From the NCBI GenBank assembly GCA_964035545.1, contig OZ037767.1, forward strand, positions 27,296,628 through 27,360,627: DNA of 64,000 nucleotides. Reading direction: 5' to 3'. Source of the stretch: Bugula neritina. Taxonomy: Eukaryota > Animalia > Bryozoa. Both the position numbers and the translations under genes were made by a program. Below are positions 1-16,950 of this stretch, piece after piece. The first letter of the stretch is position 1. Each line of letters begins with the position of its first letter. The notes under the pieces were generated by a model. The model made no database searches, was not told the DNA's origin, and saw nothing but the letters and a program-made list of their open reading frames with translations.

Positions 1-1593
1 CTCCTTAAGCTCATTGCTAAGGCCTCATTCGACTCAAAACTGCTAAAGGATGGAGCGTTTATGTTGTACTTATTGGGTACAGTCTTGAGACAATTGGTTG
101 GCTATGTTCCACCCATGTTCATTGTTAGTCGAGCTATTGACTTTGGAATAGCACAGGAGAGCACAGGCTTCCTAATGTCAGCGTATGGTGTAACTAACAT
201 CGTAGGCAGACTACTGATCAGTTTTCTGGCTGACGTATCATTTGTTAAGCCTAGAAGATGCTACTTGTATGGACTGGTTTCCATCTGTGCTGGAGCAGTG
301 ACAGTGGTTAACTTTGGAAGTCAACTTTCTCATCAAATGACTTTCTGTGCTTTTTATGGTCTCTTTTACGGTAGGCGTTAAATTAGCAATCCTCATCTAA
401 ATGAACTAGTTTCTATATATCAGTTACTCGTTTAGGATTCATTTAGGTACAGCAGTGAAGAAACTGAGATAGCCTAGGTTCTGTAATTTTCTTAATAAAA
501 TATTTTGGTTTGAGGCGCAGGTTGAAATTCTCGTACCAGAACTAAATTTCTCTTGCTAAATTTCTGTTTTAGAATGTACAGGGTTTTCTTCATTACTGTA
601 TCTACTTCCAAAGAGTCATGTGCAATTTTTTGTAAAATTTTATTGGTTTGTATTTTATTGAACAAAGGAAAAATATTGTTTTACTTGCAGGTTGTGCAAT
701 AAGTATGAAGTGCACTGTGTTGGCCGATGTTATTGGTAATCAAAAACTGTGCACTGGATTCGGAATGATTATGTTTGCCGCAGGCTTTACTGTATTTCTT
801 GGACCATCCTTAGCAGGTGGTTTGTCTTTACTGATGTTAATTAATATGGCCTTGCCCAATAAATGTTTATTGCATAGCAGCTATTGTACACACTATTTTC
901 AAAAATTTACCATATCTTGTAATGATTACTTATTTCTTGCGTCATAACATTGCTTGTAGGCATTGAAGTTCACTAGTGGGATAATTTGAAACTAAGTCAA
1001 AATATTGGAATTGAACTAAGAAAACAAATTCTATTAAGCACATTTCTGCAGCATCACACTAATTGCTAAAGTTTGCATCCCACTATGGCAGTTCCAGTCA
1101 AGCAAATCTTATAGTCTGAAAAGTAAACTACCCACCCAACTATCTAGTCAAACTAAAGCATTGCCAACCCCACCCCCCCCCCCCCCCCCACTAACTAGTA
1201 TTAGATAATCTGGGCAACTACAGGCAATGTAGTGCTTTGCTCAAAAACTGTTAGTTGGCTGCGAGATAATTATATATTACAGAAAGTACAATTTTTTTAT
1301 TTTTCATAATTCTGATTCCTACCTACATAAATAGAAATTATACTTTCTTATGTGGGCTTATAGTCAATAGCAACAATTTTATTTTTAACAAAGCAATTTC
1401 ATGTATTGTAATTATATTGTTAGGCTGGATATATGATGCAACAAGAAGTTATGACATCGTCTTTGGAATCTGTGGGGGAATATTCATCATGAGTGGAGTA
1501 GTTGTCCTCCCTATCTTATATGTTTTGAAATACCGAAAGAGAGTTAAAGAGATGAAAACGAGTATGACGATGACCAGTTTACTAAAAAACTGA
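1..1593 (+). CDS. SLC16/monocarboxylate transporter-like MFS protein, 3' part (exons <1-370, 691-816, 1424-1593)
   Basis: Three exons join in frame through GT-AG introns. They encode hydrophobic TM helices with MCT-type motifs (GVTNIVGRL, YGLFYG, GPSLAGWIYDATRSYD). Stop TGA at 1591-1593; the 5' end lies outside the window. Confidence 0.88.
450..598. mobile_element. ~150-bp MITE (Tc1/mariner-type non-autonomous element), copy 1
   Basis: Terminal inverted repeats CAGCAGTGAAGAAA / TTTCTTCATTACTG match at 12 of 14 positions. TA flanks both sides (448-449, 599-600). A homologous copy lies in the opposite orientation at 52657-52805. Confidence 0.75.
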
Positions 1594-3723: not shown

Positions 3724-6700
3724 TTAGGTGAGAAAGAAATAAAATGTTATGCTGTTGATCACTACTAACCTCACATCATCATTGTCATCTAGAAAGATCG
3801 ACTTCAAACGGTTGCATCTAGATATGTCAATATAAGGAACATTCTGATGTAACAGGAGCCACGCCTTTTGTACGTCTGCCAGCAAGAGCTTACATGGCTC
3901 ATGAAGAAACACCAGTCTCATGGCCATGTGATCATCACATAGTAGAAATCGCTCTCTCAGTAGCAGCATCAGGACAAGAGTAAAATCTTGTAGCACTGTG
4001 CTAGACCAGTCCTGGTAATGGTTACACGATACACGAGTTAAACATAATGATGCTCTAAAGTATTTGGTTAACTTCAGTAGCGTTTAAACTCCGCCACATT
4101 GGCTACATGCTTTTTCAATGCAGACGCATAAGTTTCCCAGCAACAGACCGCACAACAACTGCTAGATAACTTATTATCATTGTTGATATCTATTAAAAAC
4201 TAAAAAAGCAAGATGGCATAATAACACATCATTTTCTTCACTACAAACTCTCAACTACAAAATTTAATGCTCACCAAAATCTGAAATAACAATTTTATAA
4301 GAATAACTAAACAAGATTGCTGCCAACTATACGATAAGGATACTATACTATATCAACATTCTAAGAGTATGATATAAGAGCGAACCTGAAGAAAAAGCTG
4401 GTCCCATATGAAGAGAATAGAGGGCGTGTCAAGGACCCCCACAAACCCCTCCCCCGTCCATTTCCGTATATAATTACGAGGGTCAGACAGCAGTTGCTGT
4501 GAGTCAAGGTTAGACGACTCCATAGGATTACTCAGAAGCTCACGAGCTGCTTGTCTTTCCTAAATTAAATCGAAAAATCCACATAAATTTTATTACTTAA
4601 AGTGAGGAGAACATTGAAGAAATAATGTTAGCGCAAAAAGAATAGTTTTCATATAATCACTGCGCTTCCATTGCTAAGAATGAATCCGTGCGGATGAATT
4701 TGTGGTAGTGGTCTGCATTAACCTATGGTTGCGGTTTCATTTGATGTAACTGTTTCCAAATATTGAATAAAAAAATCCATTAGCATAATGTGAAGCAATG
4801 GAAAGAATCTAGAAGAAAAATCTAGATGTTGAGTAAAGAGTAGACAACTAAAAACAGTTGAAAGATTGCATACAGATACATACACATATACAAATCTGAT
4901 ATACAGCACTTGCCTTTTGGAGTATTTCAACAACAAAATCTTTAGCATTGACCTCTGAGTTAACTTGACTGATGGCACAGAGATGGTCGTAGAGCTCATG
5001 GTCACCTACTCTCAGGTAGTCCATGACTATGTCAGCAGTTGCATACACCTGCTTCCACTGCATGAACAGGCTGTAACATACAAACAACTTGCTATATGCT
5101 GTGAACTGTGTGCTGTTATATACTTGTGTAGCTCATCTTCGTATTGTGTCTACCTCATCCAGAGAAAACAGAAAGCAAAAACATGCTTATTCATTTATTT
5201 ATTTTGTAGAATTTTTTTTAAATATTTCAATCACCAATTGGTTGAAACTTTTAGATAAATGAGAGCTAAGAAGCAAATTGATTCATTAAGATAAAATAAG
5301 ATATATACGGTACGTCTAGCACACACTAACACTAAAACATAGCAGCTAATCTATCATTAATATGAAGAATCTTCTGTAACTTACCTGGAGTTGAGAATGT
5401 CTAGGAGCATAGCTAGCTCATATACATACTCAGGGCCAACGCTTTCAGCTTGCTCAGTAAATGCCAACTAAAACATAGCAGTTACGAAGTTAGCTTATTT
5501 AACTGATTAACTCACAGGGAATACTATAAACTCATAAACTAACATTACATACTCTCAACTCACTAACTCACAGGGAATATTCTCAACTAACTAAGAATGA
5601 ATATTCTTAACTCAGCCGAAGCACATATTTTTAACCCGCTGGAATTGCAGAGCAGCTGAAGTGATTTCTATACCTGTAGAGGAAAGAGCCACAAAATGAG
5701 ATAAGGTTGGTAGGTCTTGTCGTAGACATAGAGCACATTTAGTGCCTTGATAGCATCCTTCATTATATCCTTGTTTCTGTAACACAATTTGTATCTGGAC
5801 TAAGGCGGAGCATACATGAAACAAAGCAAGGTTTAGAGACATAATAACAAGTAGCTGCTGCTCCTTAACACAGTACGAGGCTAGTTGATGTTGGAGTATA
5901 AAGAAAAGGTGGACATACTTGCAGGAAGCCAATGCAGGCACTGTTTCGTACATTTCTACGACTGAATTCTCTATCAATCTGTGGAGAGGAGACCGAGTAG
6001 CTCTGGGTATCTTCAACTCTCCCACATTGCGAGCAACAGTTTTCCCAAACCTGCGGTGAGGAGCATAAAATATTATGTTGGTCAGTAGCTGACTAGTAGA
6101 TAGCCAGCTTGGTTTTTATAAAATGACGGCCTGTCATCAACTTGATAAGAACAGAGATTGTAAAACATACAAATTGTTTGTCTACTCATCCAATTTTGAA
6201 ACATGTAATTGATCCATACATATTTGAGATGTCAAGGCATAATTTTACAATGACAAAACACACTAGCTCTTTGGTCAGAACCAATAAACATCATAGAACT
6301 ATGAATGGTTTCAACCAATCATACAAAAATTTCCAATATTTAGCAGTTGTAAATAAAACACAGTGAAACAACATTTAGAGCCAACAAAATGATAAATTTA
6401 AAACTAATTATATACGAATCAGTTCTTTGAATACAATAAATAGCCATTTCATTTATTAACATTGTGATGACAATTGAAACTAGCTAGAGCACCTCTCTCT
6501 GACAACTTTCTCCACATTGACACCATAGGCTAGCTTTTCTCTCTCAGCTTTGTACAGAGACTCAGTCCACATGTAAGAGCGGAGTTTAGTCGGCAGCAAT
6601 CTGCCATTCAACCGTTTAGCCACTGTGGAGAACCTCCTTGGACTACGCTCTAACAACTTTACAATTGCCTCGGCTACAAAGTCATATTAGGATGTTAGAC

Positions 6701-9700
6701 GAAGCATTACCCACCATATTGTATTCAGGGTTCTCCCTAGAGACGTGTGTGTTGGGCAGAATGCAGGGTGGAGTCCTTCACATATTATATGTTGAATATA
6801 ATGACATGCACACAGCATTTATAATATATAATAATGGGTATAATTAAAATCTGAATAAAAAAATACTGTTCAATTTCAGCTTGCTATGGAATATAATCCA
6901 AGTTACTTTTAAACTGAAGAGATTTGAAGCAAAAAATAAAATCTATAATACTTTCTGCTAGACATACACAAGGAATTGCACAACGCAGTCAGAAGCACTA
7001 AACTTTTAGCTCTGAATTTGAGTCGATCCCCTAAAACTTAGACAAATCAGAGTCATTATTGCTTAGATTTGAAAACTCAGGCAGGTTCAGTTTCTGGAGA
7101 TGAGCAACTCTCTACCTGCCCATCTAGGGAATGTACTGACTGTAATATCTGATCAGCTAGTCAAAGAGAAACTGAGCTGTAGCTACTAACCAATCAATTC
7201 AATAGATTTAGAGGTCATTGAAGGGTGCAGAGGCTTCTTGTCTAAATTATATATAGTGGCTCTGACTCTTTCTGTCTTTATACTGCTTATGGAACTGGAT
7301 CTACATGTAAAAGAATAGTAATTACATAACAATTTACTTCATTATAGAAGAGCAGGCCATGTACAGGAGTCATATAATGTTATAAAGATGACATTATTAC
7401 AGATATCAATTAGATAGTACGTGGAACAGAACCTGGAGCTGCTAGCAGTAGAACCTGCAGGCGACACTGCACCATGATCTCTAGAGTGATGAGGCTGACT
7501 GTCTCTATCCTTTAGAGTTTGATGTGCGTGTTTGTCGCCTATACCAGGTAACTTCTCATATGAGTATTGAGATAACAGAGAATCTGAGTTTACAGTATCT
7601 TCCTTAACAGCAGCTATAGCAGCTTGTTCCTGCAGAATAAAAGAGGATTAATGAATACAGGAGGATATATACAGGGGGATATATAAAGAAGGATATATAC
7701 AGGAGGAGAATGTATACAAGGGGATATATACAGGATTATATATATACAGGAGGATATATACAGAAGGATATATACATCATCATCATAAGCAGTCCGCCGA
7801 GGCGACGATGACTGTTCTAGGTTTAGGTCTGTGAATCATAGCTTTCCAGATAGGTCGACGGTTAGCTGCAGCCTGCCAAGTATCCTGTCTAATGCCTCTC
7901 CAGTTGAAGTTTCTTTTCACTACATCTTTAAATCTGAGACGAGGACAGCCCTGATTCCTTTTCCCTGAACTCAGTTGTGAGTAGAACAGCTGCCTAGGTA
8001 GTCTCTCTCCATCCATTCTGTGAAGGTGACCGGTCCATCTCAGATTTTGCTCAATGAGCATATCTGCCATTGGAGCTAAACCACTTCTTCTGTATATTTT
8101 GCGATTTGAAACTTTATCTTTCCAAGTTAGCTTCATAATTTCTCTCAAATGCCTCATCATATATGAATTTAGCTTCTTGACCTGTGTTCTATAAACTGTC
8201 CATGTTTCGGCCCCATACAGCAAGGTAGATAAAACTATATACAGGAGGATTATATATACAGGAGGATATATACAGGAGGATATATACAAGATTATATATA
8301 TACAGGAGAATTATGTATACAGGAGGATATATACAGGAGGATAGATACAGGAAAAATATGTATATAGGAGAAATATGAATAAGTTAGAAAATTTTGGGGA
8401 TTTGTGAAATCAATTTTTTATTTTTGAAAAAATAGAATGATAAATTAGAATAATTACTGGTACAAGTTTAAAATAAATACAACTTATAATATGGTCAGAC
8501 AACCTTTGCTGCACCACTTACCTGCTTATAATGTTCTCTGTGTAAACCAACACGAAACGTGTTGGAAGTCTTTTTTATAAACTGCTTCATACTTTCTGAT
8601 AATTTAGTATTTTCAGCATCTGGCAGGCAGCCAATCTAAAAATATATTATGTTATCTACACCTATACAGATTATCTAAATAATTATAAATAGTTTCATCA
8701 AGCAGCGTAAAGCAACATTAATTTATTATATAAATATAAAAAGTCACAGTATGTATTCGATAAGTAATCTATTAACAAACATGACTGTTACAGCTAAACT
8801 GCAACTCACAAGTTTTTATAGTTAAGTTTAAACTGTAAATTAATTTATTCCCAAACTAACCTGCCTGGCAGCTTTCAGCAACTGATTTTTGAGCCAACTA
8901 GAAGCTTCTAATGCTAACTTTTTCTGGTCATCATCAGAGATGTGCTCCAATGTGACGTGGGACAATGACCTGAGCACATCTGGGTAGTACTTCGCCATGA
9001 AACTGTCCCCTACAATAGTCAGACTGACATCAACACTATGCAAACTGTGACACTTGAAGTGTATGTCACCTCATGGCAATGGCTATCAACATAAACCCCA
9101 CAAAATAAACATTCTCGTGATGAAAACACTTAGTTTTAAGAGCATTTTTAGTTTAAGGTTTTAAAATGGATGCACTTTTGCAATTGCCATCTGTATATTC
9201 TAGCCATATTAATTTACATGTTTATTAAAGCTAAGCCTGCGTATAAGGAAGTGCTGAGCCATGACTATGTATAGGAGAAAGTATGTAACAGTTGTCAGTA
9301 TTCTGAAGCTATAACAATGCAATAGTTGGCTGAACATTCCATTAAATGATGAAACGACACTTCCTATCAACCAGTTCACAGCATATCACTAGACAATCCT
9401 CCTTCTTATGAACTCTTACTGAAGACAGGTTGGAATTTTTGTGGGTCAAATTACCCACGCAATATAAAAAAGGATCATTGGTTAAACAAAGAGAGCCAAA
9501 AATATTTAAACGAAAGCAGAGAGCCAGCACTAAGAAAAAGTTTTGTAGGATTACATACTTCTCATTAGTCTGAAATCTTTCAGTGTACATAGTTTAGTTA
9601 GGAGTGCTGAAGTATTTTACAAGAATTTGTATGTCAATTTATAAGTAAATTAATGTTTCATTTAAAGGTGGTTAGCTGGGTGGGGTAATTACCAGTAAAC

Positions 9701-10885
9701 TTTTAGCAGAAACCCGCACTACTTATAATATAAATAACTGAATTTTACCAGAAAATTTTCTTTTTACAGTTGATGGTTTATGTTCCATTACAAATTATAG
9801 CAAATATCATGAAAACATGAACCGAAATAATACCTGTAGTTGAATAGTTTGCTCTATATTTTATAAGTATAGAAGCACTACATTACATACAGCTTACTCA
9901 GATGAGTGTAATGATACAAGAAGTGCTGAAATTGGAGCAGGTGATAACATAAATCATATTTATTACACTATTACATAATAGTTTATACAAGATATACAGT
10001 ATCACATATCAGTTTAAACAAATAACATTACAATCACTAATCCCTCTATGAATTATCTCAGTCAGATCTAAGCAAAGCCATCTGCGATATGTGTCATTAT
10101 CTGTCAGATTGCTTTATGAACAATGGACTGGTAGGCAAACTGACAACCAGTATTTTTAAGGCTTCATATATACCAGTACTTATTATGTACAGAGATGACA
10201 CAAGAAAGTGTTTATGCTTTTTGCTTTGTCAATACTAATCACACACATTTATACTGTTGAGTTATTACAGAAAAAAATACTACTTAAAAATGAAAACCAT
10301 ATGAAGCCTAAAATTAAAGATTTTTAAACATCAGAATTGTAACAGTAAAAGTACTGGTGAAGTTTCAAATTAATCACACCATAGTGGTGATAACTCATGT
10401 GTAGAACAGATGGTGGAACAACTAGAAGACTTTTAGAAAATCAGTTTTAAACACATTTTATTGAAACCAGATCTAATAACTGACTGCTGTCTGACACCAA
10501 AATTTGACATGAAAAATTCAGAAAATTGGGATAAGCACTAAAAAAATTAAAAACTTTGCCTGACGAGACAAAAAGCTTACCCAACATTTTAGCTAGAATA
10601 GAGGCTCTTTGCATTTGCGACATTTGCTTACGGACAAGAATGGCCAATGCGTCACATAACTCTTCGTTGATGACATGCCACGGCATACCTACAACGAGAA
10701 ATTGTACAGAGTAGAGTTGAGAATACTGACTTAACATAGGAAAGTGAATATGACTTTGTAACAAGGAAATAGGGCTAACCTGGTAACAGCGTTTCTTGGT
10801 AACATGAATCTAACCAGACTGAAGCAAATGGATATAATGGATTCTCATTAGTGACTGAAAGTGGAGCTTTTGGTGAAGGAGGCAT
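3724..10885 (-). CDS. Uncharacterised protein with a divergent TBC/Rab-GAP-like domain. Exons approx. 10780-10885, 10581-10688, 8861-9009, 8522-8635, 7433-7630, 7191-7300, 6493-6671, 5919-6051, 5676-5777, 5385-5467, 4914-5070, 4386-4560, 3724-4012; 3' end uncertain
   Basis: Exons splice with compatible phases into one ORF starting MPPSPKAPLSVTNENPLYPF. TBC-like motifs occur in the expected order: GRLLPTKLRSYMW (GxPxxLRxxxW), ALNVLYVYDKTYQP, DHELYDHL, RKWTGEGFVGVLDTPSILFIWDQLF. The last exon could instead splice at DDNDDVR|gttagt to an exon not identified. Confidence 0.7.
7655..8370. repeat. Degenerate ~13-15-bp minisatellite (ATATACAGGAGG-type), split in two (7655-7774, 8237-8370) by the LINE
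   Basis: Repeated TATATACAGGAGGA units are visible on both sides of the LINE fragment. Confidence 0.85.
7775..8236 (-). mobile_element. 5'-truncated RTE-clade LINE (3' end of the RT ORF) in a TBC-like gene intron
   Basis: The ORF has the typical RTE C-terminus: TLLYGAETWT...LRWTGHLHRM..ERLPRQLFY...GKRNQGCPRLRFKD...WQAAANRRPIWK. It ends in a (TGA)n tail at 7775-7785. Confidence 0.85.
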
Positions 10886-10924
10886 TGTCAACGGAATAAT
10901 GAGTAAATAGTGAGTTAGATAAGG

Positions 10925-12347
10925 TTATAAGTGATTTCGGGCTTGAAGTGGTCGGTTTCCGTCAGCTGCAGTAACAGGTGGAGGTACTGCTTCCAACTCT
11001 GCTTTACCTGAGCCGTAACAGTATTTTAGCTTCGAGTCAATATAGGAATTCTAAAAAATAACATTTATAATCCTATAAATTGACTTAAAAATATAGCAGT
11101 TTGTTTAGAATAAAATAGTGTATAGCATAATATAAAAATGTAATTAGAATAAGCAAAACTTCCAATTTGTTAGTTTAGCTAATACGTCTGAGGTTTAGAA
11201 TACAGCTTATCGGCAGATAGAAAATTTAACAACTTTTAGAATATATATACCTCATGCTTGACACTTTCTGATGAAGTTCGACATTTTGTAAGACACAGAT
11301 CAAAGTGGTCAGTTATAAGCGAGTACACACGGTTAATATTATTAGGTTTTTGATCCAGCACTTTCCTCAATAAGTATACCTATCAAAATGACATACATAA
11401 AACAATGTTGCTTCTAAATTAACAAAATAGTTTTATGGGACAAAAACACAACACATTCTAGTGCAATCCTTTGTATCATAACACTCAACTGGCAAGTTAT
11501 AATTAATACAGTTAACAGTACCGGAGCTTTCACAGGCCTCTGACAGTGTCAATCATGTATTATTGATGTATTATCTTCAGGCTTAGCTGCCACCGAAGCC
11601 AGTCAAACAAATCAATTTGATTACAATTCATGGTATAAGTAAATCTCAAATATTGTAAACTTAGTAGTGGAATACATTAATCAATTATGAAAAAAGTCTT
11701 ACTGCCAAGATAGCCACATGGCAAAGCTGATTAAAATCTAGGTATTGTATTGAGAATTGAATTATATTTATTCATTATTGGCAAACCTTTTGTGGATGCA
11801 AGCAGCAAGAAACACACTGTTCGTAGAGCGAGCAGCAGCCTGACGAGCTACAAGTATCGCATTTGTAACGTACTGTCGAAGGGGAGTTAATTTTGCAACA
11901 ACCATTTACTTGCAGATCAAACCTGTCGCAAAAGTAGCCATTTTCATCTGCAATGAATGCCCTTCCTTGAACTGAGTTACGGCAATTGTAAGCCAAATTT
12001 AAATTGTCCCGTTGCTTTATAGAATTTACTGTCTGTTTACCAACACCATTAGCTTTGTGAAATGAGTGCTTCTTTCTATTTTTTACTGGTTTATGAGTAT
12101 ACCCAGCTTTAACTTCAACTTGATTTAAATTAAAATTAAGAGATTTCTTAACCTCATCTTGATCAAGAACTAAAGGCTTCACAGTTTTTAATATTTCGTC
12201 AATTTTCACTGGTGATACTATATCATCGTCGTCGTCTGAAACACGAGTCTTGTACTTCTTATAAGTAGCCACAATAAAATAAGTTAAAGAGAATAAGAAT
12301 ATTGCGAGGAGAACACGTCGTTTTCTCAAAAACAGTGTGGCACTCAT
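10925..12347 (-). CDS. SPRING1: SREBP-regulating gene protein SPRING (C12orf49/UPF0454), ~271 aa; exons 11787-12347, 11251-11379, 10925-11050
   Basis: N-terminal basic residues and a signal-anchor ([22 protein letters not shown]) precede the family Cys-rich domain CRNSVQG...ADENGYFC...NGCC...C..C...[18 protein letters not shown]|...[20 protein letters not shown]|NSY...KYCYG. Both introns are phase-0 GT-AG; TAA at 10925-10927. Confidence 0.93.
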
Positions 12348-12754
12348 CACCACAACAACATTTTTAGTTGATCTAGTGACTACCGGAAATAAATATACTT
12401 TTTCATGCTGTCGTCGAAGAAGGTAGAGGGTACGCTGGGTGTTGTTACCTGCCCGAACATTTGTCTACATTTTCAAATGCCACATTTTCTTTCTAGCACG
12501 CAATTTTTATGTAGGCAGAGAAATGATTTACACTATAACGTCGGAAGATTATTGATGATTGTACGTAAATTCAACGAATCTAACTTTAAAAAAAATAAGC
12601 GAGCCCCTTAGTTCGTTTTCTAGCAACTTTCGAAAATCGCCTTTGTACAGAGGTTTGAATTGACTTTTAGTTTTCGCAACCTAAGTGTGTGATAAACTAA
12701 ACACGAACAGTAATACCACTACTAGTTTGCAAACTTAACATTTATATATGTAAG
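12348..12754. promoter_or_regulatory. Probable bidirectional promoter region between SPRING1 and LSM8
   Basis: The two start codons are divergent and ~407 bp apart. The interval is CpG-richer than the surrounding introns and has an ETS-like CCGGAA at ~12383. The individual motifs are not validated. Confidence 0.55.
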
Positions 12755-13042
12755 ATGGCGTCAGAATTAGAAGGCTATATAAATCACACTGTCACTGTTT
12801 TTACCTGTGAAGGACGGATTATTGTTGGAACCATGAAGGGGTTCGATCAAACTATAAATCTGATACTGGAAGACAGTCACGAGAGAGTATATTCCACTAC
12901 AGGAGTGGAGCAAGTGACATTAGGATTATACATTGTTAGAGGTGATAATGTAGCTCTGGTTGGTGAAGTAGATGAAGAAGTTGATAAGAAAATTGATTTT
13001 ACCGAGATCCATGTTGAGCCTATGGGAGCAGTTGTGCACTAA
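12755..13042 (+). CDS. LSM8: U6 snRNA-associated Sm-like protein LSm8 (95 aa, intronless CDS)
   Basis: MASELEGYINHTVTVFTCEGRIIVGTMKGFDQTINLILEDSHERVYS...GVEQVTLGLYIVRGDNVALVGEVDEEVD matches the LSm8 signature. AATAAA at ~13271. Confidence 0.96.
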   Translation: MASELEGYINHTVTVFTCEGRIIVGTMKGFDQTINLILEDSHERVYSTTGVEQVTLGLYIVRGDNVALVGEVDEEVDKKIDFTEIHVEPMGAVVH

Positions 13043-13997
13043 CTCCAAGTAGTCATTGTTAATATTGTAAACCCGGATCTCTCACGTCACTGTATAGGTA
13101 TTTAATTGTCTCTATCTCTAAGTTTTGGGTTTCATCAAAATTTTACAAAGAACTTATATAAGAAAGGGTTCAACAGGTTTTATCAAGACTCCTGAAAGTG
13201 TTTCAACATGAAACAAAAATATTGGTAGTCATCTTATCTTAGTCTGTAAGTCAAGTGTAGTGTAAAAGCAAATAAATAGAATATCAATAGGTTTATATAA
13301 TTATTTGTTATTTTGACTGTTGCATTATTTTATCTCACTGTATTCAAGATTTCATAGGCAACGAAAATTGATTTATTTTTAGGAAAAGCTGGCTCTGATA
13401 AAGAAAAAGGTAGACCGAAAAAGTAGTAATTATCTGATTGAGTTCAATGTAAAATTTGTTTTTTAAGCTCGGTAATGAATTTAGTACATACATTATATTT
13501 TATGTATATATTGATTATAGTTATGGATCATAACAATAAAATAGTATTACAAAATGTGGCATTGCTTGCAGGTTTATAATCTTAACTAGTTCACTTTGAT
13601 GAGTTGGTTTCAAAAATTAATAGCAAAATATTTACAAGAATATAGCATAATATATTTTATCACTATACAACAAACTTACAATTCACAAGTCGAAAAATTA
13701 TTATGATAGTGCAATTTAAATCAAGTTTATTGATTTAATGGTATTAATGGTAGAAAACTTCTAACGTAATTGTCAAAAGAAATATGCATATGCTATTACT
13801 GGAAAACAGTTGTTTTCCATTACTGCTACCTTATATAAAATTAAAAATAGAAAATACCAACTACTATAAAACAATACAAATTGGCAAAAAAAAAACCGAA
13901 ATTACTTCTATTTGACCAATTTTCAAGTAAATACATGTAATAATAAATTATGAGAGACTTAACAAGCCAAGGAACAAAATACAGAATGAGGAAATGT

Positions 13998-16950
13998 TTA
14001 TTCGTGACCTTTAACTAAAAGATTTAAAGCTCTCTGTAAGTAATCTATAGCAGACTCGCGGTCTTCATAAGTGAGAGAACTAGTAGCAAACTTTGAATAT
14101 TTTGTAGCTTTTTCCCAATCAACTTGAAAATTTCCAGCAGTTGCTAAAACAATGATTTAATATATTTACTAAAGCTACAAAGTGTGATGTAAAGAATATA
14201 CAATTGCAGAAGAAGGAACCATATACTTACCAGGTGATGGCTGTTGGTGAATAGGTGGCTGTTGGGGCACAGTAGCAGGTGGTTGTTGGGGTCCAGTAGC
14301 AGGTGGTTGTTGAGACACATTAGGTGGTTGTTGAGACACATTAGGTGGTTGTTGAGACACAGTAGGTGGTTGGTGAGAACCTTCATCCACTTGATTGCGT
14401 GATGCCATGTAAGATGAGATTGCCAGATTTCCTATGTCTAAAATATAGCTTTTAGTCAATACCAGAAGCTGCTTTGAAATTGAAATAAATTGTCAGAAAT
14501 TTTATTCAATACAGACCCAGATCTTGTCCTTCTTCATCTACAGGGCCGGGCACAGGAGTTATCCCTGACTTCATACATTTGTTTATATATGCTGATTTAT
14601 ACCTAGCATACTTTTTATACTTCTCAATCTAAAATAAAATTGCTGTATGAAGAAAAACTCTGGAAAATGCAATTGTGTATTTATGAATTTCATTTCAAAT
14701 TTAAAAAATTACAAAAAAACTTCAGTTTTTAAATACTTACATCTTCATTTAGTGGTCCAAAAACTGTTAGAACTTCAAAAAGTAACATTGAGTTATAAAA
14801 TGACTTCACAACATTTCTAAAATATAGGGTTGCATAGTAATTAATAAAACTAATTAAACATTAACTGCTGTTGAATGTACCTTTTAGCTTACTGTATATG
14901 TACAATTTGCAATTCTAAAACCCTAAATCTGCGTAAATAAAATGGTTTTTTAAAACTAATAAAATTACTTTTCCTGGGTAGTTTAGTAACTATAATGCCA
15001 TTACTAACCAACACTCTGCCTAAGTGCTGATTAGTATTGAGTTTATTAAGGTTTGAAATCAGGTGATTAAAGCTTAGACTTAAGTTTAGGAAAATATTTT
15101 TCAAGCTTTTATACAGTTATTACAGACATACTTGCAAATTTGCAACAAGTTCCAAAGAAACATCAGACAGACATTTATAAATAATAATAACTTATCAATC
15201 ACCTTAAGAAAACAAAAATTTGTAGCCATATTTTACGCCAGAAAAATAATTAACTTTTTTTATTTATTAAAATACAAGTAATGATAACTCAACATACTTG
15301 TTATATCTACCAGCTCTATCTTCAGTGTCAGCATGAGCAAACAATTTCAGAGCATAATGCTCTACAGAAGCCTGAGCTACAGTATCTGATTTGATAGCTT
15401 CCTCTGATGCTAGAGCTGCCTTCATCTATCAAAATAATAACAGTTTCATAGCGAAGAAAATTTTTACCTACGTAAAAATGGTGTCAAGTTTAAAAGATTC
15501 CGAACATACAAACAATAAAATATGTAGTTATGTAATTAAAACTTTTGTCATCACTTATTACTAAATGCACAAAAATTGCCTGTTCTAGCTGATCCATCAA
15601 GTATAGCAGAAATGCTTTAGCTTCTGGAGATGTTCTGTCAATTTCCATACCCTTTTGAAGAGCATACATTCGACCTGAATGAACATAAAAATGTTTTACT
15701 TTTATGGTGATTGTCACATTGTGTTTATATGCTTTTATAGTATTATTTTATAACCACAGATCAATTATTTGAGAATTATCAACATTAATAGTCATAGCAT
15801 TGGTTACATAAAAATAAATATGAATGACCTAATTCAATTGCAAACATTGTTAATAAAATATTGATATAATATATTCAAAGTATAAAACAAGACTAAGAGC
15901 AAGAGTAATGATTCACTTATAATTATTAATATTCATAATATGATTATATTAAAGTGTTCACTTAATGTGATAATTATAATACACACCTAAATGAATATCA
16001 TAATAACTTGCTTGAAAATCAAAATGAGCCACTAAATAAATAAACGAGTAATAACTCACAAGCAATAGAAAATCATAACGATTGTACTACTTACAATCAA
16101 TACAAGTAACAATAAATATAATACTGTAATCAATTTTATCCTTATGGTTATGATCTGATTATTATAATTATTGTAAAATATAAACTTGAATTGTGACATT
16201 TACTAAAATAATAAAGTTAAAGTAACTATTATTATATAAATATTTAGTTGATTTAAATTTAATAAATGAATGTTCATGTTGTAGTAATATTAGCGTTACC
16301 ATAAATATCACACTCGGTATGAACTATTACACTTAAATCTAATATAATACTATTACTATTAATCATCTTAATCTGAAAATAAATTATTGAATTTGAATAT
16401 CAGCATGACTTGTTAGTGTTACACTTACTCTTAGTCTTAGTTTTACTAATAGTGATACTCATACTGATAGTGACTTACTCTTGCAACTGAGTCTGAGTAA
16501 CTACTAACTTACTCCAGTACTTAGTAGTTTAAGTTAGTGTTATACTTAGACTCTTATCAGTTTTATCATTATGTCTTATAGTTATACTTAGTTTTATACT
16601 TATAGATTTTAAGCTTATAAGTTTATAGTTATACTACTACCAGTTTGTTCGCTTTTATTATCAATATCAAATTAAACATGAATTATTATCAATAATAATA
16701 TTGTTATTATAATTATGAATATGATTGTCATTAATGATTATCATTATGATTATGATTATCAACTATAAGTATAAGACAAGTACATAAATATTATGAATCT
16801 ATTTCAAACTTAGCAACTATTTTACAACTTGGATTGTTACTTACAGTAATAAGACACGATTGGAAATTTATTATCATGTTCTTGGGCAGTTTTTAGGTAG
16901 TGTTGAAGAGGTTTAAAATTTGGAGGAAGTGGGGGAATGGAAGCTGCCAT
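13998..16950 (-). CDS. VTA1: Vacuolar protein sorting-associated protein VTA1 (ESCRT/VPS4 cofactor). Exons approx. 16845-16950, 15580-15674, 15299-15425, 14741-14816, 14517-14628, 14231-14430, 13998-14143
   Basis: N-terminal MIT region: MAASIPPLPPNFKPLQHYLKTAQEHD...YYCRMYALQKGMEID...LMDQLEQ...EHYALKLFAHADTEDRAGR. A Pro/Gln-rich linker follows. C-terminal VSL domain: KATKYSKFATSSLTYEDRESAIDYLQRALNLL. Confidence 0.94.
14258..14380 (-). repeat. Coding 21/24-bp tandem repeat (QQPPxVS / QQPPATxP) in the VTA1 linker
   Basis: Repeated GGTGGTTGTTGAGACACATTA units on the + strand translate to QQPPNVS on the - strand. Confidence 0.85.

Follow-up and report, generated by a model that had tools for sequence, protein, structure and literature searches.

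Well-studied animal mRNAs with two open reading frames (ORFs) are mostly confined to a single lineage or carry a tiny upstream ORF. Dicistronic transcripts of Drosophila (FlyBase; PMC4528330) combine two full ORFs that are unrelated to each other in a single spliced mRNA; 159 such pairs are described, with stop-to-start distances of -34 to 319 nt at exclusively polycistronic loci (PMC4528330). In humans, ASDURF-ASNSD1, PYURF-PIGY, MIURF-MIEF1 and STREMI-SLC35A4 (PMC13303939) also yield two conserved proteins per mRNA. The polycistronic mRNAs of green algae (PMC7896298) hold conserved colinear ORF pairs on single mRNAs, with unconstrained frame and separate proteins, and the spliced-leader operons of nematodes, tunicates and chaetognaths (PMC12460157) join close same-strand genes (under 250 bp apart) in one transcription unit. 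Here, we analysed a locus of the bryozoan Bugula neritina within a window of 64,000 nucleotides, the whole stretch of DNA under study, in which SPRING1 is followed on the same strand by a second reading frame, ORF2. The stop-to-start distance of 39 nt lies within the Drosophila range for exclusively polycistronic loci, and the two ORFs probably share one spliced RNA.

SPRING1 lies on the minus strand in three coding exons (12347-11787, 11379-11251 and 11050-10925) encoding 271 aa, and was recognised by a Pfam PF10218 match above cut-off together with an N-terminal hydrophobic span. Coding exon 1 (11787-12347) holds the N-terminal transmembrane segment and the start of the Cys-rich domain (PF10218, E 1e-22) and is joined across intron 1 in RNA; exon 2 (11251-11379; PF10218, E 6e-9) has RNA joints on both sides. 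The following exon (10780-11050) is shared by both genes and comprises the last 41 codons of SPRING1, the TAA stop codon (10925-10927), an intercistronic spacer of 39 nt (10886-10924) and the first 35 codons of ORF2, from the ATG at 10885 to the donor after 10780. The spacer amounts to 13 sense codons devoid of AUG, AG and poly(A) signals; it is unstructured and evolves like non-coding DNA. Both TAA and spacer are kept in two other Bugula haplotypes (L001, L002), and the NCBI protein KAF6029308.1 (C12orf49, B. neritina) has 271 aa and a C-terminus identical to that of our model; the peptide of coding exon 1 groups with this protein. Judged from these comparisons, the SPRING1 stop is real. The initial annotation had placed the stop, the 13 codons, the ATG and the donor at these same positions. 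The last four residues of SPRING1 (10928-10939, minus strand) read R-x-H-L/S in four bryozoan lineages, the remaining tail being variable. SPRING1 and ORF2 each occur at this one place only in the 216-Mb assembly.

Upstream, the 5' leader of the shared transcript (12348-12488, minus strand) contains five AUGs, and an RNA contig of run X3 begins at 12488 without a loose end. Sites resembling a donor and an acceptor at 12380-12448 (minus strand) could bound a UTR intron of 69 nt or provide an outron acceptor; the X3 contig retains this segment unspliced. An intronless LSM-family gene (12755-13042, plus strand), which we take to be LSM8-like, stands head to head with SPRING1, the two ATGs lying about 410 nt apart. 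This arrangement recurs in L001-L009 and L020 and suggests a conserved bryozoan bidirectional promoter. Beyond it follows a VTA1 gene at about 13300-15700 (minus strand; Pfam Vta1 in L001 and L002), and at the other end of the locus what is presumably an MFS/monocarboxylate-transporter-like gene (61-1593, plus strand) lies tail to tail with ORF2.

ORF2 (3724-10885, minus strand) is modelled with a coding length of 1,902 nt in 13 exons: exons 1-7 at 10885-10780, 10688-10581, 9009-8861, 8635-8522, 7629-7433, 7300-7191 and 6673-6493, and exons 8-13 at 6050-5919, 5776-5674, 5467-5385, 5070-4914, 4559-4386 and 4011-3724. The predicted protein of 633 aa is backed by RNA for the first four junctions, by orthologues, by the fold of one orthologue and by motifs; the model agrees with the gene of about 13 exons, TBC-like and entered in phase, that had first been proposed. 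A motif W-x-x-S-x-x-Q-E-T-L-L-P follows 24 residues after the ATG at 10885, and nearly all full-length orthologues have a Met about 7-32 residues before it. As this spacing matches, the ATG at 10885 is the true start, and a downstream start at MPWH (about 10686), raised earlier as a possible refutation of the arrangement, is contradicted by the Met position in orthologues. Intron 11 (4560-4913, minus strand) is the sole ORF2 intron modelled with a GC-AG boundary, and intron 4 contains a fragment (7783-8289, minus strand) flanked by a low-complexity TATATCCTCCTG-type repeat, which we take to resemble the 3' end of a non-LTR retrotransposon ORF. Linkage to SPRING1 may also explain why the ORF2 models of Ptychodera and Saccoglossus lack their first exons.

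To follow the junction in RNA, four runs were compared over 8450-12740, namely the RNA runs X1, X3 and X4 (X4 being oligo-dT) from three studies and the DNA run X15. At contig level, spliced RNA is continuous over both ORFs in all three studies: contigs pass through the shared exon as a single unbroken piece, from the last SPRING1 exon through stop and spacer into ORF2 exon 1, with the predicted introns removed on the ORF2 side in X1, X3 and X4, and on the SPRING1 side also in X1 and X3. The DNA run has zero of these joints. The X3 contig, 2,956 nt in length, starts at 12488, covers SPRING1 exons 1-3, the spacer and ORF2 exons 1-4, and its loose end corresponds to exon 5. The model predicts 2,898 nt of spliced sequence between 12488 and the ORF2 stop; judging by its length, this contig therefore probably contains the two ORFs in full, followed by a short tail. 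All of this evidence consists of short-read contigs from a haplotype 90-99% like the window, which are blind to single molecules, starts, ends, levels and short leaders and may join overlapping transcripts; the TAA within them is deduced from the two related haplotypes and the NCBI protein.

The gene pair recurs well outside Bugula. ORF2 comes immediately after SPRING1 in three other species, probably bryozoans, with spacers of 57 nt (L016), 126 nt (L006) and 284 nt (L008). This order is repeated in a gastropod whose TBC region is 88% like that of Aplysia (L014, 305 nt) and, with 819 nt between the genes, in the hemichordate Ptychodera flava (L011). On an intronless ambulacrarian contig of 3,298 nt (L010), the two ORFs are both complete and separated by 786 nt; the ORF2 of this contig clusters with hemichordates (support 98/95). 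Spacers outside Bugula range from 57 to 819 nt. By sequence comparison, the pairing is common to spiralians and ambulacrarians, and because it is present in both it may date back to the origin of bilaterian animals. Conservation of adjacency, frame and spacer length had been proposed as a check on the arrangement: adjacency holds across phyla, whereas frame and length (39-819 nt) vary. In Bugula, both ORFs are complete, non-overlapping and under purifying selection (27 synonymous versus 9 non-synonymous changes over 1,023 nt).

About 5 kb of sequence upstream of ORF2 in the bivalve Tegillarca showed no SPRING1, nor did 10 kb in the gecko Heteronotia binoei (L015), and a scan of JGI metagenomes gave eight ORF2 loci, 0 of them extending to SPRING1. 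The gecko ORF2 (L015 1-10000) and a RING gene, presumably RNFT1, are arranged head to head. Cattle SPRING1 adjoins RNFT2 (PMC8650139). Taken together, these neighbourhoods tentatively suggest that vertebrate genome duplication split the pair, with reciprocal loss at the RNFT1 and RNFT2 loci. Gene structures differ among the lineages: in the gastropod contig, derived from a marine metagenome (L014 1-5680), SPRING1 has introns and the 1,400-codon ORF2 is without any, with one frameshift in an A homopolymer near 4410-4420 that is probably an assembly error. The second SPRING1 intron is missing in L006 and L008, which have longer, AG-containing spacers, and is kept in the Bugula window and L016, which have short AG-free ones, as well as in L020, in which the spacer is not reached.

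What does ORF2 encode? For protein searches, Bugula exons were used individually and orthologues stood in for the joined Bugula proteins. Pfam gave a weak C-terminal RabGAP-TBC match alone, with scores mostly under cut-off across the family, and a PDB sequence search with an ORF2 profile returned no match; the TBC relationship came from a fold search alone. The AlphaFold model of the L010 orthologue (pLDDT 75), used in place of the Bugula protein, matches TBC domains only, best Gyp1p (Z 21.5; residues 213-565, rmsd 4.3 A over 288 residues). Compared with the TBC/Rab-GAP domain (PF00566; Gyp1p, TBC1D22A), the fold is alike at 10-15% identity, but ORF2 proteins have an additional N-terminal helical domain and the catalytic fingers are absent: IxxDxxR (Arg finger) and YxQG (Gln finger) occur in 0 of 21 aligned members, and the Bugula model has IENSVVE and YQPY at these positions, matched by eye. 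ORF2 thus belongs to the TBC-fold proteins but, as no member carries either motif, is probably not a conventional GAP; its first description as 'Rab-GAP-like' suits the fold alone. Non-catalytic TBC proteins are known, for example TBC1D7 and TBC1D23.

Orthologues are present in molluscs, annelids, nemerteans, a brachiopod, a rotifer, amphioxus and hemichordates, and among vertebrates in sharks, coelacanth, lungfish, amphibians, lizards and turtles. Almost all of them carry the label 'uncharacterized' or 'hypothetical'. Two orthologue lists contained none from mammals, birds, arthropods or teleosts, which is not proof of absence. Most orthologues measure 1,200-1,660 aa, with 600-900 extra C-terminal residues in molluscs, annelids and amphioxus, whereas the Bugula and L010 proteins end after the TBC domain; one query with the C-terminal half of a mollusc ORF2 found nothing in the Bugula genome. 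No papers on ORF2 appeared in the literature searched. SPRING itself has a luminal Cys-rich domain and a link to S1P (bioRxiv 10.1101/2023.03.28.534447).

We propose, with a probability of roughly one half, that one spliced mRNA carries both ORFs and gives rise to two separate proteins, ORF2 being reached by reinitiation or internal entry. A single promoter upstream of 12488, divergent to that of LSM8, would drive a spliced mRNA of about 2.95 kb comprising the whole SPRING1 ORF, the 39-nt non-coding spacer and the whole of ORF2, and at contig level this is the main SPRING1 mRNA. As conservation supports, SPRING1 would end at its TAA and ORF2 would begin at its own conserved ATG, and in bryozoans a spacer once several hundred nt long would have contracted to 39-284 nt. 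The dicistronic mRNA was among the models first put forward, and it has gained support from junction contigs spliced on both sides and from the conservation of the pair across phyla. On the spliced RNA, 15 AUGs precede that of ORF2, which makes leaky scanning unlikely. The ORF2 AUG, with A at -3, is the first AUG after the SPRING1 stop, and ribosomes would reach it by post-termination reinitiation or internal entry; neither RNA structure nor a TURBS-type UGGGA was found at the junction (z -0.32). Twelve exon junctions lie downstream of the SPRING1 stop, yet the two-ORF form persists; translation of ORF2 on the same mRNA would account for its escape from NMD. Some observations weigh against this proposal. 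Reinitiation after an ORF of 271 codons is normally inefficient, and ambulacrarian spacers of about 800 nt with 6-14 upstream AUGs fit scanning reinitiation poorly. Three bryozoan lineages have spacers free of AUG, a feature that is individually not significant (P 0.13-0.77) and would also fit a 5' UTR. The lack of SPRING1 in the stretches covered upstream of ORF2 in Tegillarca and the gecko counts against the proposal as well.

A possible, if more doubtful, alternative is that the SPRING1 mRNA carries ORF2 as a silent 3' region and that the protein is made from a shorter mRNA holding ORF2 alone, produced by spliced-leader or alternative cis-splicing onto the acceptor at 11050 or from a promoter inside SPRING1. 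Such an mRNA would have a leader of 165 nt without AUGs, leaving the ATG at 10885 as first AUG, and indeed SPRING1 exon 3 plus spacer lacks AUG in every frame (P 0.15). The acceptor at 11050 is strong and is the nearest strong one to the spacer. Most dicistronic loci of Drosophila yield monocistronic isoforms too, and the isoform for the 3' ORF usually starts at a promoter further downstream (PMC4528330). The long, AUG-rich ambulacrarian spacers fit this alternative better than reinitiation. Against it, the contigs of all three RNA runs show no loose end (leader or tail) between 11050 and 10780, though assemblers clip short tips, and no spliced leader or alternative joint at 11050 or in the spacer. 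AG is wholly absent from the 39-nt Bugula spacer and the 57-nt L016 spacer; lacking AG, the site does not qualify as a leader-resolved operon junction of the classical type. The second SPRING1 intron is missing in L006 and L008, and acceptor-like sites before ORF2 in other species are overall no better than shuffles (P 0.03-0.98); a splice acceptor conserved upstream of ORF2 across species was rejected as not above chance.

Two ordinary overlapping genes merged by the assembler would also give unbroken contigs, if SPRING1 were polyadenylated non-canonically in or just after the shared exon and ORF2 had its promoter inside SPRING1. De Bruijn contigs do merge same-strand overlapping RNAs without a branch, and Bugula is gene-dense. 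Nevertheless, we consider this explanation improbable. AATAAA and ATTAAA are lacking from the spacer and ORF2 exon 1, the sole variant hexamer being a weak AAGAAA at 10797; the first AATAAA 3' of the SPRING1 stop starts at 10462 (minus strand) within ORF2 intron 2, as the initial annotation had noted in finding no poly(A) signal between the two coding sequences. AATAAA is missing from six other spacers checked as well. In X3 and X4 there is no intronic contig fit for a separate SPRING1 3' UTR, bearing in mind that contigs cannot show ends, and the same merging would need to recur in an ambulacrarian with a spacer of 786 nt.

Readthrough of the UAA-C, or a fusion, had likewise been offered at the outset; from sequence comparison both appear unlikely. 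In its most elaborate form, which we regard as highly improbable, readthrough would create a SPRING1-ORF2 fusion, at least in cheilostome-like bryozoans, whose hydrophobic spacer peptide would act as a second membrane span and return the TBC domain to the cytosol. The spacer is stop-free and in frame in three of four bryozoan lineages despite differing lengths (39, 57 and 126 nt), with a chance of being open of 0.31 for L016 and 0.02 for L006 (42 codons); spacer peptides are hydrophobic, and the R-x-H-L/S end of SPRING1 is kept in four bryozoans. For Bugula alone, however, an in-frame, open spacer is at chance level (1/3 x 0.44-0.62), and the frame is shared by four of six other lineages (P 0.10). 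Outside cheilostome-like bryozoans, neither the frame nor its openness is conserved: in four other lineages the spacer is closed or out of frame, the latter being true of L008 and the gastropod, and an in-frame stop 2-11 codons before the ORF2 ATG makes a fusion impossible in all three non-bryozoans. Nor is there coding-type constraint after the SPRING1 stop. Between Bugula haplotypes, the spacer has 4 non-synonymous and 1 synonymous substitutions against 9 and 27 in the flanking coding sequence (ratio p 0.028), or 10.3% versus 0.9% non-synonymous change per nt (Fisher p 0.0009), and 8-10% of its sites differ, as in introns and unlike exons. The stop context is variable (UAA-C, UAA-U, UAG-A), the supposed second transmembrane span was rejected because its hydrophobicity does not exceed that of shuffled AT-rich spacers, and about 75 ORF2 proteins contain 0 with SPRING1 sequence. 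A spliced fusion that removes the SPRING1 stop was discarded, no such joint being present in the RNA contigs.

Extending the proposal of a two-ORF mRNA back in time, we can speculate, with rather less conviction, that co-translation of SPRING1 with a catalytically dead TBC protein goes back to the bilaterian ancestor, by reinitiation or internal entry after a membrane-protein ORF of 200-270 codons, and that the pair was later divided between duplicated vertebrate loci (SPRING1-RNFT2 and ORF2-RNFT1). If this were true, ORF2 would be an unrecognised partner of the S1P/SREBP pathway. Linkage to SPRING1 is the sole functional hint for a pseudo-TBC family that reaches sharks, lungfish, amphibians and reptiles, and, purely as a hypothesis, ORF2 could act alongside SPRING1 in Golgi traffic or SREBP processing. 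A full-size, intron-containing pair found from bryozoans and gastropods to hemichordates provides a natural test case for how a second long ORF is reached and, with 12 exon junctions behind the first stop, for how NMD is avoided; the 39-nt Bugula spacer offers a minimal version for a reporter.

Literature searches for the SPRING1-ORF2 pair, for C12orf49/SPRING1 as a bicistronic gene or for trans-splicing in Bugula found nothing relevant, and SPRING1/C12orf49 is absent by name from the main text of PMC13303939. The human bicistronic transcripts treated there have a small upstream ORF in the 5' UTR, whereas the upstream ORF here encodes a membrane protein of 200-271 aa and has introns. Green-algal mRNAs rely on leaky scanning past a weak upstream AUG, which is unlikely for SPRING1-ORF2 given its 15 upstream AUGs. 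In contrast to spliced-leader operons, the Bugula spacer has neither a 3' splice acceptor nor a poly(A) signal, no leader was seen at the junction in the RNA contigs, and mature RNA spans both ORFs. The Drosophila transcripts are described within insects, while SPRING1-ORF2 spans spiralians and ambulacrarians and has a 13-exon downstream ORF. Dicistronic mRNAs as such are already known; new here is the deep conservation of the pair, which also stands out by its age, its large upstream ORF and its uncharacterised pseudo-TBC partner.
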